A stretch of DNA of 64,000 nt from sequence record KY499642.1; one strand, given 5' to 3'. Below are positions 33,868 through 53,082 of this stretch, piece after piece. The position numbers and the translations under genes were made by a program. Position 1 is the stretch's first letter, and each line of letters starts with the position of its first letter. The notes below the pieces were generated by a model, which was not told the DNA's origin, searched no databases, and saw only the letters and a list, made by a program, of their open reading frames with translations.

Positions 33868-33898
33868 TGTTAAGATGTATTGCAGTAGTACCCTAATG

Positions 33899-33929
33899 AA
33901 AGAAGCCCGTAGTAAGGCTTCTTTTTTTT
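33899..33929 (+). terminator. Intrinsic terminator
   Basis: AGAAGCC-CGTAGTAA-GGCTTCT plus T run. Confidence 0.75.
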
Positions 33930-33980
33930 GTCTTTATTTTTCACGGAGTTAGAAATGGTCTGTACAGAAAGGTATGTGGG

Positions 33981-34649
33981 GTGGATATGATAGGTGATGT
34001 AGAATTTAGTTTCGCATTAGTGGGTTCAAGAGAAGCCTCTGTATTCGATTGTGAAGCGTTAGAAGAAGCAGCGGTAGAGTTAATGATGTTAGGTGCGAAA
34101 GGAGCATCTGGTGGCGCTCCGGGGCCAGACACTGCATTAACGAATGCTATTCTTAGAATGATGACAGACACAGGAATGGAAGGGTGGAACTTCGGCTCTA
34201 TTCATCTCCCGTGGGATGGATTCAATGACTTGCGTCGTGGGGATATTGGTGGGGCTTGCATCATTAATGATGAGTCCTACATTCGTAAGCTTGCAGAAAC
34301 CATAGGACGTATTGCCCGTGGTGGGTACTTCGGTTTAGGTCGAGGTGGGTGTAGTTTACATTCTCGTAACCCGTATCAAGTATTGGGGTATAACTTAGTT
34401 ACGCCAGTCAATGTGGTGATCACCTCGGCACCGTTCAATAACAGAGGTAAGGTAACTGGTGGGACAGGTACAGCGTGTGCGATAGCTACGGCAATGGAAA
34501 TCCCTGTAATTAACTTACAGAAGCCGCATGGGTTTGAGCAATTAGAATCGCTACTGGAAGGGTTGAAGAATCCGCCTGCTGGATGGAAAGGGAAGATTCG
34601 CATTACACGCGATGAACCTACAAAAGTACAATTAATTGGAGAAGAATAA
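33981..34649 (+). CDS. DprA-like SLOG-superfamily nucleotide-binding protein
   Basis: ALVGSRE, SGGAPGPD, IHLPWDGFN, LHSRNPYQVLG, GGTGTA...IPVINL match the phage DprA/SLOG family. Confidence 0.85.
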   Translation: MDMIGDVEFSFALVGSREASVFDCEALEEAAVELMMLGAKGASGGAPGPDTALTNAILRMMTDTGMEGWNFGSIHLPWDGFNDLRRGDIGGACIINDESYIRKLAETIGRIARGGYFGLGRGGCSLHSRNPYQVLGYNLVTPVNVVITSAPFNNRGKVTGGTGTACAIATAMEIPVINLQKPHGFEQLESLLEGLKNPPAGWKGKIRITRDEPTKVQLIGEE

Positions 34650-35713
34650 TGGCTGTAGTACAACGTGGGCTGTTTGAAGAGCTAGATAACATCTTTGGTC
34701 AATATCGTGATAAGCGTGTTACTGTGCTTCACTCAGGTGGGTTAGATTCGAATATCATTCTTGCTGGACTTTACTTTGCAGGTGCAGATGTTAATGCGGT
34801 ATCCATCCGCGCTAAAGTATTGGCGTCGTCTACAATCGAAGAGCGTACACGTAAGTTATTTATCGAGCGTTTAAAAGAATCAAAAAAGGGTAGGGGTACC
34901 ATTACCTCAGAAACTGTTACCTTTGATGGTAGACTACAAGGTATCCACCGTAATCGCTTCTCGCAAATGTCTATCTGGTTAAACATGTTGCCGATTGTTT
35001 CTCGTGAAAATGATGATGCAGTTATCATCGGATATGTCATGTCAGACCAAGGTAACTCAATGATTGATTACCTCAAGAAGACATGGCGCACACATGCTCC
35101 ATACCTTAAGTGGACGGCGAAGCTGCCATCGCTAGATTTCCCAGTTACACGTTTCGCTAAATCTGAGCTAATCAAATACTTGCAGCATAAGTGTAAAGAA
35201 ACAGGCTTGGATGAAAACATCGTACACATCCATTGGTTCTGTGAATTACAACAGGGTTCGGTCATGAAACGTTGTGAGACACACTGTGAAAGCTGTAAGC
35301 GCGCTAAGAACGAGAACCTCTTTGACTGGGATGTTGCAACTAATATCGAACGCATCTTTAAAAGCCGTTTACACCTGCTTGAGTTCTTAGAGTTGAATCG
35401 TGACAGTGAATCACTGCGCATGAAGAAGCGCGAGGATGGTAGTGTAGATACATACATTGTCGTAAAGGGTACAACAACAGAACGCTTTGTATACAACACA
35501 CCACGTCGTGAGGTTAACTACTACAAAGACCCTGAAGCGTTATCTATGCCTGAAAAGGCGTCCCCTTACGATCACTTCGAACATGCACGTCCTAATCAGT
35601 TCCCTGACCCAGAACACTTCCCTGAGTATTATTTGAAGTCAGATGAAACTATCAAAGCAGAAGAAGTTGCTGCAATGAAAAAGGAAGAAACTCATGAGCT
35701 CGCAGAATCCTAA
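34649..35713 (+). CDS. QueC-like PP-loop ATPase
   Basis: VLHSGGLDS PP-loop, IGY..SD, FP....K, Zn-site WFCE...CETHCESC; TAATG coupling to SLOG gene. Confidence 0.8.
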   Translation: MAVVQRGLFEELDNIFGQYRDKRVTVLHSGGLDSNIILAGLYFAGADVNAVSIRAKVLASSTIEERTRKLFIERLKESKKGRGTITSETVTFDGRLQGIHRNRFSQMSIWLNMLPIVSRENDDAVIIGYVMSDQGNSMIDYLKKTWRTHAPYLKWTAKLPSLDFPVTRFAKSELIKYLQHKCKETGLDENIVHIHWFCELQQGSVMKRCETHCESCKRAKNENLFDWDVATNIERIFKSRLHLLEFLELNRDSESLRMKKREDGSVDTYIVVKGTTTERFVYNTPRREVNYYKDPEALSMPEKASPYDHFEHARPNQFPDPEHFPEYYLKSDETIKAEEVAAMKKEETHELAES

Positions 35714-36206
35714 ATATGTTGAAGAAGTTGCTATCTTCTCAGAAGAAGGTAAGTTGATAAGTAAGCACGTTAAACCGATTGACGAACAGACACTCAACTT
35801 TCTAAAGCAGATTGCTCCGAACAATATCGGTGTGTGGTCAGGTATCCTCATTGGTCGTCAGAACGTTCAGTTCAACGCAATCAATGATAGACTCCTTACT
35901 ACGTTAGTGTCGGCAGCGGCGGCGGGTAAAGACACTATCCTAGTGATGCCAAGATGTCACGGACGACGAACTATGGAACGTGCTGTTGAGAAAGCTCGCG
36001 GTATCACTATCGGCTACGATGCAGATATGGAAAAGCGTGTCCAGCGTATCCTAAACACGACATTAAGTCTTGACCCAATGCCAGACCCATGTAGTGAATA
36101 CTTTGAAGGTGCAGAGTTTGAAAATCGACACACCTTAAAGGTAGAAGCTAATCGCAAGGTTGGTGGTAAACATGCACAGCCATTTTGGCGTAATGGTCGT
36201 TGGTAA
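35694..36206 (+). CDS. Hypothetical protein
   Basis: 170 aa; ILVMPRCHGRR; C-terminal GKHAQPFWRNGRW. Confidence 0.65.
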   Translation: MSSQNPKYVEEVAIFSEEGKLISKHVKPIDEQTLNFLKQIAPNNIGVWSGILIGRQNVQFNAINDRLLTTLVSAAAAGKDTILVMPRCHGRRTMERAVEKARGITIGYDADMEKRVQRILNTTLSLDPMPDPCSEYFEGAEFENRHTLKVEANRKVGGKHAQPFWRNGRW

Positions 36207-36403
36207 TAAGTATGGGTAAAACCGTAAGTATGGAAGGTCGTAAGGTTGGCACTACTAGAGCTAACATCGGTACGATTGGCGAGGTAGAGATAACTGTGGT
36301 GTCTGTGTCAGACCCAAACGCTACAGTACCTAAGTTCCTTCCTAGAGATAAGAGTAGGCGAGGCAAACATGCTAAGCCTTGGTATAAAAGAGAGAGATGG
36401 TAA
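36200..36403 (+). CDS. Small hypothetical protein
   Basis: 67 aa; C-terminal GKHAKPWYKRERW repeats that of the upstream gene. Confidence 0.6.
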   Translation: MVISMGKTVSMEGRKVGTTRANIGTIGEVEITVVSVSDPNATVPKFLPRDKSRRGKHAKPWYKRERW

Positions 36404-37669: not shown

Positions 37670-37700
37670 GGAGAGCCACGGCTCTCCCTTCTTTTTTTTT
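37670..37700 (+). terminator. Intrinsic terminator
   Basis: GGAGAGC-CACG-GCTCTCC plus T run. Confidence 0.8.
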
Positions 37701-47455: not shown

Positions 47456-48811
47456 ATGAAACAATATCTAAATGTAGCGGAAGATATCATTGACAACGGT
47501 ATGGAACAGGAGAACCGTACTGGCGTTAACACACTCTCCGTCTTTGGCCGTGATTTACGAGTTGACCTGCTCGACGGCTTCCCTGCTCCGACTACAAAGA
47601 AAGGTTTCTTCAAAGGTGCTAAAGTTGAACTGACTTGGATGCTAAAAGGTTTGACCAACCTTGAGTTCTTGCATCAACATGGCGTCATGTTCTGGGACCA
47701 ATGGGCTATCAAAGGAGAGCATAAGGTTCTCAAGCCATTGGGTGAACTTAAGACGTCTGCAATGTTGATGGGTAAGTCAGTCAACGAAGACCTGTACAAT
47801 GCTGGTGATATCGAAGCTCTTGAAGCTGAGCTCGGCATGGAAGTAGCGGATGTAGTAGATGACCGTTACGTTGAAATCCCACCTACTTACGAATACGTAC
47901 TCGATGCTGTATGTGAATCATTCGGTTTAGGTAAGGATGACGCTGAGAAGAAGATGATGGAAGTGTTCCATACACACCGTCCTCTACACAGCGGTTTCGG
48001 TATCACTAAGCAAGAAGTGGCTGATGCTAACGCACGTTCTATGAAGCTGCCTGAGAAGGTTCGTCTCAAGACATGTGAAGTTGGTGACCTTGGTCCAGTG
48101 TATGGTCAGATGATCCGTAACTTCCCTAACTCGGATGGTACAACAACTGACCAACTACAGACGTTAGTTGATGGTCTATTGAACAACCCACTATCACGTC
48201 GCCACTTAGTTGACCTGTGGTGTCCTGAGATGCTTCCTGACGAGACTAAGTCTCCTCAAGAGAACGTTGCCTTGGGTAAACAAGCGTTGGCTCCTTGTCA
48301 CATGCTGTGGACGTTTAAAGTATTGAAGGCGAAAGAAGAAGACCGTCGTAAGTACCTTGACCTGAACTACAAGCAGTTCCGTCTTGACCATTTGAAAGAC
48401 TTGGTTGAAGAAGAGATGAAGGTGAAAGGTGGTTCATTGTCACCTGAGCAGGAATACGAAGTCCTACTTAGCTGCGTGCCTGAATATCGTCTGAACCTAC
48501 ATACACAACTTCGTTCAAACGACTGGCCTGCTGGCAACCCTGTGAACTTCATGTTCTACGCGATTCTGTGTGAACTTGCTGCGCATCAGACTGGTTTCAT
48601 TCCGGGCGAGCTGTGGTTAACCGCTACAGATGCGCACGTGTACGTTGACCAGATTGAAGGTATTAAAGAGCAGCTAACTCGTGAACCGTACCCACTTCCA
48701 CGTCTACGTATTAAAGCGAAACGTGCGAACCTCTGGGATTACGAACCGGAAGACTTCGAGTTGGAAGGTTACCAATGTCATGACACAATCAAATTTGCAG
48801 TAGCGAAGTAA
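47456..48811 (+). CDS. thyA: Thymidylate synthase with large insertions
   Basis: NRTG, FP..TTKK, EL.W, FWDQWA, GDLGPVYG, LAPCH (catalytic Cys), RSND, GNPVN, DAHVY. Confidence 0.95.
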   Translation: MKQYLNVAEDIIDNGMEQENRTGVNTLSVFGRDLRVDLLDGFPAPTTKKGFFKGAKVELTWMLKGLTNLEFLHQHGVMFWDQWAIKGEHKVLKPLGELKTSAMLMGKSVNEDLYNAGDIEALEAELGMEVADVVDDRYVEIPPTYEYVLDAVCESFGLGKDDAEKKMMEVFHTHRPLHSGFGITKQEVADANARSMKLPEKVRLKTCEVGDLGPVYGQMIRNFPNSDGTTTDQLQTLVDGLLNNPLSRRHLVDLWCPEMLPDETKSPQENVALGKQALAPCHMLWTFKVLKAKEEDRRKYLDLNYKQFRLDHLKDLVEEEMKVKGGSLSPEQEYEVLLSCVPEYRLNLHTQLRSNDWPAGNPVNFMFYAILCELAAHQTGFIPGELWLTATDAHVYVDQIEGIKEQLTREPYPLPRLRIKAKRANLWDYEPEDFELEGYQCHDTIKFAVAK

Positions 48812-52186: not shown

Positions 52187-53082
52187 AAGAATATGGCAAT
52201 CTAGTCAAAATATGTCAGGACGACTTTGATGATGGTGTTCAAGAGCTGGTACTGAAATTCAGTAATGGTGATAGCATCACACAACGCCGTGTATGGCCGG
52301 ATGTAATCTATCGTGACAATGATGGTAATGATAGTCTACATGAAGTGGTCTACTACTCTGACGAGTTTAAAGAGCTTGAGAAAGCAAACCCTGACGCGGC
52401 ATTTGCACTTATCTGTAAATGCAGTAAGCTGATTGAAGGAACCGACATTAAGCCACAAGCGGTGGCTGTTGAAGACTTCATCGGCGGTCAAGTAGAAATC
52501 CGTGACCAACGTGTTTTACATGAACACTGGTTCCAAGTGATTCAGATGAGCTGTCGTCACTCCCTATGGGAAGGCGGTTGGTCTGAGTACAAAGAACATA
52601 CGTTTGTGAAAGGGCGTGAAGGTGTCGCATGTGTGCTCTACGATAAAGACAGTGATGTGATTGTCCTTATTGAAGAGTTCCGCATCGGCGCTGTCTATGA
52701 AGACAGTCCGTGGATGGTAGGGATTCCTACTGGCGGGTTGGAAGAAGGCGAAGATCCAATGGAAGGCGCTCGACGTGAATGTGAAGAAGAGGCAGGGTTA
52801 AAACCTTACCACATGGAACACATGTTGACTTACAAACAGTCTCCGGGTTTCACTACACATACACAGCACCTGTTCTACGGTTTAGTGGATGCAAGCCAAG
52901 CGCCTGAAAAGGTTCAAGGTTTGGACTCCGAGGGTGAGGACATTCGTGTGGAAGTAATTCCTGCACATGAAGTTCGTTACATGCTCGGTAAGAAAGAGTT
53001 CAAGAATGGTACAGCCATTACTGCACTCCAACAATTCCTAATGTTCCATTACGAATCAGCACGTAGTGTTGTAGAAGCTTAA
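52183..53082 (+). CDS. nudF: ADP-ribose pyrophosphatase (NudF) with extra N-terminal domain
   Basis: Nudix box GGLEEGEDPMEGARRECEEEAGL, LIEEFRIG, SPG, GLDSEGEDIRV; about 100-aa N-terminal extension. Confidence 0.85.
   Translation: MKEYGNLVKICQDDFDDGVQELVLKFSNGDSITQRRVWPDVIYRDNDGNDSLHEVVYYSDEFKELEKANPDAAFALICKCSKLIEGTDIKPQAVAVEDFIGGQVEIRDQRVLHEHWFQVIQMSCRHSLWEGGWSEYKEHTFVKGREGVACVLYDKDSDVIVLIEEFRIGAVYEDSPWMVGIPTGGLEEGEDPMEGARRECEEEAGLKPYHMEHMLTYKQSPGFTTHTQHLFYGLVDASQAPEKVQGLDSEGEDIRVEVIPAHEVRYMLGKKEFKNGTAITALQQFLMFHYESARSVVEA

Follow-up and report, generated by a model that had tools for sequence, protein, structure and literature searches.

A DprA-type SLOG protein and a divergent QueC-superfamily PP-loop enzyme form a conserved phage module outside the queuosine and DNA-deazaguanine pathways

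What does a QueC-like enzyme do in a phage that has no recognisable genes for the remainder of a deazaguanine pathway, and why is its gene coupled to that of a DprA-like protein? The question is raised by two adjacent genes of Vibrio jumbo phage pVa-21 (KY499642.1, 231,998 bp), which lie within bases 1-64000 of the genome; this 64-kb stretch, the DNA that was analysed, is called the window here. pVa-21 is a phiKZ-like jumbo phage (PMC6472347), and the two genes are not discussed in PMC6472347. GenBank labels the first, gene A (pVa21_035), as 'DNA recombination-mediator protein A' and the second, gene B (pVa21_036), as hypothetical. We find that A and B are a translationally coupled and apparently co-transcribed pair and that they form a conserved phage module that is not a queuosine or DNA-deazaguanine pathway. 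We tentatively regard B, with somewhat less than even confidence, as an adenylate-forming enzyme of the QueC superfamily that acts on a new substrate and has the SLOG protein A as its partner in the metabolism of DNA or nucleotides.

Both genes are on the + strand, A at 33987..34649 from the ATG used in GenBank or from a GTG at 33981 (220-222 residues), and B at 34649..35713 (354 residues). At the junction, GGAGAAGAATAATGGCT, the TAA stop codon of A (34647-34649) shares its final A with the ATG of B, and a GGAG Shine-Dalgarno sequence within the 3' end of A lies 7 nucleotides upstream of this ATG (whole junction, 34638..34651, +). The TAATG overlap and the translational coupling had been claimed in an earlier reading of the window, the first-pass annotation, and direct reading of the sequence bears them out. 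Its assignment of the two genes as DprA/SLOG and QueC-like also holds at the superfamily level, on the basis of the PHROG matches, folds and motifs given below.

By PHROG match and fold, B is a long-form PP-loop ATPase of a phage-specific QueC-superfamily clade; its full-length profile match to phrog_1550 ('QueC-like') has an E value of 2.6e-52. Motif conservation was read across 75 aligned family members. The ATP pyrophosphatase motif, SGGLDS at residues 29-34 (34733..34750, +), is invariant or nearly so, and all four cysteines of the QueC-type zinc motif, Cys198-x10-Cys209-x3-Cys213-x2-Cys216 (35240..35296, +), are invariant. Their spacing is a variant of the canonical C(x)8CxxCxxC and aligns to the zinc motifs of QueC and of the QueC-family protein Cap9; as in Cap9, the motif opens with 'CE' (family pattern CE..CGxCxSC). 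Further phrog_1550 motifs found in B are Q..W, GYVM.D and FP..K.

The substrate motifs of QueC have fared differently. Libby et al. 2026 (PMC13329287) characterize canonical QueC by SGGxDS, YxQxHxxE, VPxRN, YPDC and C(x)8CxxCxxC, and residues Y35, R99, Y131 and Y189 are essential in Escherichia coli QueC (PMC13329287). When B is aligned by profile to QueC (PDB 3bl5), a comparison of sequences only, YxQxHxxE, VPxRN and YPDC are unmatched. At the corresponding sites the B clade has SIRAK.. for YxQxHxxE, a family-invariant Gln106 (Q..W) for the essential Arg, and S-M-I-D for GYPD, and its family-specific conserved set consists of E64, Q106, W110, G128-Y129, D133, F164-P165 and K171. What B has in common with canonical QueC is the SGGxDS loop, a Lys that is conserved behind the FP motif and the C-terminal four-cysteine zinc site, together with an overall likeness (Z 14.7 over 178 residues; profile E 5.9e-12 with the B family), whereas it lacks the three substrate motifs and the queD/queE/folE context and has an extra C-terminal domain. 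As judged from these alignments, B has kept the ATP-pyrophosphatase and zinc machinery and lost the deazaguanine pocket, and because the pocket is remodelled B would not make 7-cyano-7-deazaguanine (preQ0).

The rest of the genome agrees. Six-frame hidden Markov model (HMM) searches were run on the complete 231,998-bp record of pVa-21 and on its relative pVp-JHP1101, with control genomes that were matched in each search. TGT/DpdA, PTPS/QueD, GTP cyclohydrolase I (FolE) and radical-SAM/QueE were not found in either phage, nor were Pfam QueC and SMODS/CD-NTase. The first-pass annotation had reported queD, queE, folE and dpdA to be missing from the 64 kb and had proposed a search of the whole genome for que and dpd genes; that search returned nothing in pVa-21, so by HMM the absence extends to all 231,998 bp. 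Its view that the pair does not serve DNA hypermodification is upheld to the extent that, with the pathway genes absent genome-wide, there is no self-contained route to deazaguanine in DNA. B itself gives no match to Pfam QueC (PF06508) at E ≤ 1, and the six-frame genome search gave none at E ≤ 10; 61 of the 75 aligned B relatives match PF06508 at E ≤ 0.001.

These results bear on the simplest reading of the name, that B is a functional 7-cyano-7-deazaguanine synthase which converts host-made 7-carboxy-7-deazaguanine (CDG) to preQ0 for tRNA or DNA modification. Membership of the QueC superfamily, with PP-loop and zinc site retained, is what such an enzyme would display, and the partial deazaguanine gene sets of jumbo phages might be completed by the host (Iyer et al., PMC7824862). 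We nevertheless consider it extremely improbable, since the motifs that hold E. coli QueC residues Y35, R99 and Y131 have no counterpart in the profile alignment, the Pfam QueC model fails to match B even at E 10, and the genome encodes no TGT/DpdA to insert the base and no queD, queE or folE. The canonical QueC or DNA-deazaguanine pathway as such was rejected, both for the absence of the pathway genes and for the substrate motifs missing from B.

Which member of the superfamily does B resemble most? A B family profile was made from nine close homologues, and its search against 1.84 billion cluster representatives (E ≤ 0.001) gave 420 representatives of the phage-specific B branch. Against the sequences of known structures the same profile matched QueC (3bl5, 5.9e-12; 2pg3, 7.6e-12), Cap9 (6.2e-11) and QatC (8.7e-4). 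The AlphaFold model of B has a predicted local distance difference test score (pLDDT) of 93.3. The highest VIA-align Z was with Cap9 (17.0; root-mean-square deviation 2.6 Å, 171/181 residues), followed by the [4Fe-4S] LarE (16.0) and QueC (14.7), the nucleotide-acting PP-loop enzymes GMP synthase (14.1), YcfA with GTP (13.0) and ThiI (12.7), and QatC (12.4). The top Foldseek match was likewise Cap9, in complex with CdnD (E 6.7e-7).

Cap9 belongs to the type IV cyclic oligonucleotide-based antiphage signalling system (CBASS). It shares with B the PP-loop, the 'CE' zinc motif and a compact core (PDB 9nto chain B), but it keeps the CDG-binding Y/FxQ, RN and YxDC motifs (PMC13329287), which B does not. 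The Tyr and Asp of the Cap9 YxD motif stack on and read the deazaguanine, and QatC has two Thr instead (PMC13279940). [quoted passage not shown] QatC, of the QatABCD system (PDB 9y01, 9vlk), offers a different parallel: it has a remodelled pocket without the Tyr/Asp CDG pair, has extra domains and forms a tight complex with a neighbouring gene product (PMC13279940). It is, however, a weaker match to B (Z 12.4, profile E 8.7e-4), no QatC-specific motif of PMC13329287 was seen in B, and its partner has an MGTS N-terminus that the candidate partners of B lack. QatA-, QatB- and QatD-type domains were not recognised by Pfam or PHROG in the neighbouring genes, and the genome was not searched for these families. 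Membership of type IV CBASS or Qat was rejected, there being no CD-NTase, no TGT-like Cap10 in the genome and no Met-Gly partner; PADLOC gave a marginal PP-loop match for B (E 0.019) and none for A. The analogy with Cap9 and QatC drawn in the first-pass annotation is supported by the fold, Cap9 being the best structural match, and is weakened by the absence of the deazaguanine-recognition residues and of any candidate partner with a conserved N-terminal Met-Gly motif.

One other group invites comparison, here by its description only. The QueC 'Cluster 4' proteins (PMC13329287) are divergent and QueC-like with a variant cysteine motif, and ∼89% are encoded beside a PfkB/nucleoside 2-deoxyribosyltransferase fusion of Rossmann type. 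They thus offer a precedent for a divergent QueC-like enzyme encoded next to a protein that processes nucleosides. They are, however, bacterial and keep YGQ(x)6E, and their partner is of another family (PF00294-PF05014) than A.

The long form of B is set apart by its C-terminal domain (residues 226-354; 35324..35710, +), which is confidently modelled as three beta-hairpins and a long terminal helix and is acidic (isoelectric point, pI, 5.1). It has no recognisable fold; the ESM Atlas gave no informative match, and Pfam and PHROG offered no clue to its function above chance. The B profile match reaches this domain (profile positions 284-343) only in P0024-P0027, P0037 and P0040; readable gene contexts were those of P0024-P0027, and in 4/4 gene A is nearby. 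Most phage proteins of phrog_1550, in contrast, are short forms, which have neither the C-terminal domain of B nor a DprA-like neighbour.

The partner, A, is a single-domain SLOG protein of the DprA branch. It matches phrog_768 ('DprA-like') with E 5.5e-42 and falls under the curated cut-offs of Pfam DNA_processg_A (PF02481; 17.9 vs 29.6 bits) and TIGR00732 (11.9 vs 191 bits). GSR, SGGAxGxD, RN..Q.LG and GGT..A, which we take to be the DprA Rossmann-core motifs, are invariant or nearly so across 15 A homologues. The AlphaFold model (pLDDT 93.6; predicted template modelling score, pTM, 0.91) is a single domain with a short C-terminal beta extension. Its top PDB match is Helicobacter pylori DprA (HpDprA; E 1.5e-5, template modelling score, TM, 0.48), and further matches are the DprA-like ShosA, Moco carrier proteins, the ThsA SLOG domain and LOG. 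With DprA/Smf (PDB 4ljk, 5mll, 3uqz, 3maj) and ShosA (8zva), A has in common the Rossmann-type SLOG core and its motifs (E 1.5e-5 to 3.3e-4), but the SAM-like N-terminal and winged-helix C-terminal flanks of DprA are both missing from A, and the TM is only ∼0.48. A LOG-type phosphoribohydrolase was rejected for A because the catalytic Glu is missing: PGGxGTxxE is not matched (A reads TGGTGTACAIA), and the structural match to LOG is weaker (TM 0.38).

Is the pairing of A and B more than the accident of one genome? An A homologue lies no more than 3.5 kb from B in every long-form relative with readable context, and five arrangements of the two genes occur. A is coupled directly to B in pVa-21, in L010 (B 79% identical) and in the distant L013 (A 50% identical), with coordinate overlap in the latter two. 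In pVp-JHP1101 (B 78% identical) and in L006-L009 (B 44-92%), a 101-residue open reading frame (ORF) stands between A and B and is coupled at both ends; L009, which carries it, is the closest relative (B 92% identical). The other three arrangements occur with more distant long-form B homologues, ∼25% identical: in L014 the order is inverted, B then A; L015 has A, an 85-residue ORF, B, a ThyA-like gene, a 94-residue ORF and NUDIX; and L150 and L170 have A, three ORFs, NUDIX, a 163-residue ORF, B and a ThyA-like gene. Apart from ThyA-like and NUDIX, the genes around B in L015 and L150 gave no informative PHROG match. B diverges faster than A (in L007, 44% against 73% identity). The search of IMG/VR with the close-relative alignment gave no match, and the metagenome scan contributed just three short loci. 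The first-pass annotation had made its pairing of the genes depend on their being linked in relatives, and as the long-form relatives do keep A near B, the pairing survives that test. The linkage exceeds chance.

The alternative is that the adjacency is inherited gene order with no shared biochemistry. A would then be a DprA-like recombination mediator, or an accessory protein that binds single strands, working by itself, and B would act independently. In keeping with this, Iyer et al. 2021 (PMC7824862) noted that group 1 and 2 jumbo phages have copies of DprA/Smf as possible extra single-stranded-DNA-binding proteins, and two surveys of IMG/VR also fit. Among 80 sampled loci with a short-form B, none has a clear A-like gene within 5 kb (0/80; one marginal match, E 0.007), and 54/54 other loci with an A-like gene lack a B-like gene and have mostly T4-type neighbours. 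A-like neighbours are also absent beside the B-like genes of YC, 1.244.A, Noxifer, Cba120 and RSF1. Simple inheritance of gene order sits poorly, however, with a linkage that outlasts an inversion (L014) and the insertion of unrelated genes (L015, L150) at ∼25% B identity, with the TAATG coupling in pVa-21 and the coordinate overlaps in L010 and L013, and with the co-occurrence of the B C-terminal domain with A. We give it a small chance.

In the A-only loci the commonest identified neighbours are of T4 type, namely Gp23, scaffold protein, Dda-like helicase, IMPDH/GMP-reductase-like and GapR. In T4-like contigs such as L114-L118, genes found a few kb at most from the DprA-like gene are one resembling IMPDH/GMP-reductase (9 loci) and one for a GapR-like DNA-binding protein (21 loci). 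At another locus (L012:921-3708), the gene for a DprA-like SLOG protein runs into the start of one for an NAD-dependent DNA ligase, and a Macro-domain gene comes next; some members of family A may, as this arrangement hints, be linked to NAD or ADP-ribose.

The wider B family was examined for its gene context. Most matches to the B profile, among the matches listed, have 200-280 residues with SGGxDS and CE..CGxCxSC, and almost none has YxDC or Y/FxQx5E. The family occurs in 206 INPHARED records, mostly Ackermannviridae-type phages of Salmonella and Escherichia and several jumbo phages; members include Vi01, Cba120 orf028, Vibrio phage YC, Ralstonia RSL2/RSF1 and Pseudomonas Noxifer. Of the 80 short-form loci from IMG/VR (L016-L095), 50, among them L018, L019 and L067, have a conserved array of a 137-residue ORF (c137), SNF2 helicase, a 120-residue ORF (c120, bracketed in the array), the QueC-like gene, family-B DNA polymerase (PolB), c211 and c132. 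The stop codon of the short form lies -22 to +61 nucleotides from the start of PolB in 38/40 cases, and the median pairwise identity of the QueC-like proteins in this array is just 35%. The four small conserved ORFs (137, 120, 211 and 132 residues) have no Pfam or PHROG match. In Cba120 the B relative lies among topoisomerase, exonuclease and dCMP deaminase genes. The pVa-21 window itself has a ThyA-like ORF of 453 residues (47459-48805, +), whose match to thymidylate synthase is split into two pieces (positions 1-166 and 159-265 of the profile) that are ∼37 residues apart in the ORF, and a NUDIX domain (52615-52992, +) within a 300-residue ORF. From these contexts we infer that the module belongs to phage DNA or nucleotide metabolism and not to queuosine, DNA-deazaguanine or CBASS/Qat pathways.

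How might such a module work? PP-loop enzymes such as QueC, GMP synthase, TilS, ThiI and LarE adenylate a carboxylate or nucleobase carbonyl, which is then attacked by a nitrogen or sulfur nucleophile. By analogy, B would adenylate one of these groups on a substrate that is not CDG and would pass the adenylated substrate to a nitrogen or sulfur nucleophile. A would probably supply or hold a nucleotide or a single-stranded nucleic-acid ligand. Since the forms with the C-terminal domain and a readable context all have A nearby, this domain is a likely docking surface for A, and the two proteins may form a complex.

Several observations weigh against placing the pair in DNA or nucleotide metabolism. 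The replication context rests on short forms with ∼25% identity to B and could stem from a single large phage lineage. A-like and B-like genes are mostly found apart, so that each can work alone, and the linkage is partly inherited synteny, as the pVa-21 group and L013 have flanking genes in common. The structure closest to B, that of Cap9, is of a protein-modifying enzyme and not a metabolic one. Finally, A is mildly acidic (pI 5.3), which does not favour DNA binding.

A role in counter-defence, which the first-pass annotation had raised as a possibility along with mimicry, was also weighed. In it, A would sense or soak up a nucleotide of host immunity, for instance an isomer of cyclic ADP-ribose, and/or B would use up a host metabolite such as the CDG that type IV CBASS or Qat needs. 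The defences that nucleus-forming phages meet are mainly those that work by signalling or abortive infection. Structural matches of A include the ShosA antitoxin and the SLOG domain of ThsA with 3'cADPR bound, and one A-like gene lies beside an NAD-dependent ligase gene and a Macro-domain gene (L012). The ThsA matches are, however, weak (TM 0.38) and come after DprA, the residues that bind CDG are missing from B, and PADLOC was marginal for B and silent for A. There is no positive evidence for counter-defence or mimicry, the neighbours being genes of replication and nucleotide metabolism (SNF2 helicase, PolB, ThyA-like, NUDIX) and not of anti-defence, and we regard it as quite improbable.

What surrounds the pair in pVa-21? 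A terminator-like hairpin with a 10-pair stem and a T-run (33898..33933, +) closes the upstream unit just 5' of A. It is retained in six relatives, where both arms vary (GAAGCC/GGCTTC, GAAGTC/GACTTC, GAACC/GGTTC) and the T-run is invariant. With this terminator just upstream and tightly packed genes downstream, A seems to head a compact transcription unit. Between terminator and gene lies a box, TCTTTATTTTTCACGG (33931..33946, +), near-invariant in six relatives including the distant L007 and L013, which may be a promoter or an element of the 5' untranslated region. A repeated promoter motif upstream of A was ruled out, as TCTTTATTTTTCACGG is found once in the window, and a sigma-70 scan for a promoter near A scored at or below chance. 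The next terminator-like hairpin with a T-run, found by a consensus scan only (37670..37697, +), is the likely end of the unit that starts at A.

Two small ORFs follow B. The first, pVa21_037 (170 residues; 35694..36206, +), overlaps the 3' end of B by 20 nucleotides and gave no Pfam, PHROG or Atlas assignment above chance. The second, of 67 residues (36200..36403, +; TTG start, alternative ATG at 36212 and 36230), is absent from the GenBank annotation; its homologues are called in relatives L002 and L006-L010. It overlaps pVa21_037 and is itself overlapped by pVa21_038. Both ORFs end in a 24-residue tail with the consensus TL.V.AN.KV.GKH..P[FW][WY]....RW-stop, which reads TLKVEANRKVGGKHAQPFWRNGRW-stop in pVa21_037 (36132-36203) and RGKHAKPWYKRERW-stop in the 67-residue ORF. 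In L002 and L006-L010 the homologues of these ORFs, likewise placed after B, have the same tails at their ends. In L015 the 85-residue ORF between A and B ends in TLIVRANNKVKGKHLKPWYISKRW (13/24 identical to the pVa21_037 tail; pairwise E 6e-7), and in L150 and L170 the 163-residue ORF just upstream of B ends in SRWGRW. The strict motif occurs twice in six frames of the 232-kb genome, both times in these two ORFs, and is absent from ∼140 other loci; no tail-bearing ORF was seen in L013 and L014 within the DNA available. A looser likeness is found outside the window, at an ORF end GGKTKSPFYLSPYKW-stop (pVa-21 genome 179089-179160, -; locus L164). A likeness of the L015 tail (L015:4913-4972) to DUF2986 was too weak to use (E 0.26).

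One homologue of the 67-residue ORF has a further peculiarity. The 97-residue ORF of L008 (L008:6525-6818, +) begins with a near-exact EF-Tu N-terminus (GTP_EFTU positions 1-16, E 0.003), the start of the P-loop included, continues with a degenerate repeat of the same strand and ends in the RW tail. It may be a captured host tuf fragment or an EF-Tu mimic. Of this EF-Tu-like start the pVa-21 ORF keeps only NIGTIGEVE.

The 101-residue ORF that separates A from B in most of the close relatives (L002:4644-4949, L006:4696-5001, L007:1711-2016, L008:4696-5001, L009:3696-4001) is rich in Trp, Tyr and Gly, has 41 invariant residues among four copies, and has no Pfam or PHROG match. Being present in most relatives and cleanly absent in pVa-21, L010 and L013, it is polymorphic; it was probably ancestral in the pVa-21 group and lost more than once. 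Homology to the small ORFs in the same place in L015 and L014 was ruled out (hhalign probability 0.2), and the idea that the first 124 of the 418 phrog_1550 profile positions correspond to it was rejected, as it matches neither PHROG nor Pfam. The first-pass annotation had described a two-gene module. Its conserved linkage is confirmed, but the module is not strictly one of two genes, since the 101-residue ORF and the tail-bearing ORFs are linked to it as well.

Tightly coupled small ORFs next to B raise the question of whether they are its substrates. B might be a protein or peptide ligase of Cap9/QatC type, joining an ATP-activated small carboxylate or a protein carboxyl to a partner encoded next to it; the candidate partners are the tail-bearing ORFs, the small and variable ORF that separates A from B, or A itself. 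Such a ligase would account for Cap9-CdnD being the best structural match by both measures (Z 17.0; Foldseek E 6.7e-7) and for the Cap9-like 'CE' opening of the zinc motif, and QatC provides a precedent in that it, too, lacks the Tyr/Asp CDG pair yet acts on a protein partner (PMC13279940). The tail is common to ORFs near B in two very diverged clades, at differing positions, and is found nowhere else in the 232-kb genome. None of the candidates, however, has the conserved Met-Gly-(Gly/Thr)-Ser N-terminus needed in type IV CBASS and Qat (PMC13279940). A begins with MIGD, MLGK or MIAG, the 101-residue ORF with MSVE, MSAN or MTGF, and pVa21_037 with MSSQ; the 67-residue ORF begins with MGKT only from the ATG at 36212, which is not conserved in L006-L008. 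L013 and L014 keep the A-B pair without a tail-bearing ORF in the available DNA, and the 101-residue ORF is missing from pVa-21, L010 and L013 while A and B are intact. No enzyme of the QueC family is known to modify a C-terminal tail. On balance a ligase of this kind has a modest chance of being correct. Its most specific form, a three- or four-component module in which B, helped by A, recognises or modifies the C-terminal tail of the adjacent small phage proteins, is a long shot; if true, it would be protein or peptide tagging by a QueC-family enzyme at a C-terminal tail instead of at an N-terminal glycine.

Both families already carry names in PHROG, and the presence of DprA/Smf in jumbo phages was noted by Iyer et al. 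(2021), so the individual genes are not new. In the literature searched we found no account of the loss of the deazaguanine pocket in this clade, of the long form with its C-terminal domain and DprA-type partner, of the PolB-adjacent short forms or of the shared C-terminal tail, and no experimental study of the phrog_1550 family; the text of the 2026 survey of PF06508 makes no mention of the B phage clade (PMC13329287).

The reading of B as an adenylate-forming enzyme with a new substrate, partnered by A, matters for how the QueC family is viewed. The family has recently been shown to extend beyond preQ0, as Cap9 and QatC serve bacterial immunity by a shown or proposed attachment of a nucleobase to proteins. 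Here, a sizeable phage branch keeps the ATP and zinc machinery with what appears from the alignments to be a different pocket. Its short forms are built into replication modules beside PolB, and its long-form subclade has gained a C-terminal domain and a dedicated DprA-type SLOG partner and, in some phages, small proteins that bear the shared tail. The A-B pair is small and easily expressed, and hence testable. Its chemistry, if found, would be a new reaction on the QueC scaffold, and might reveal either a new protein modification or a step, so far unrecognised, in how phages metabolise DNA or nucleotides.

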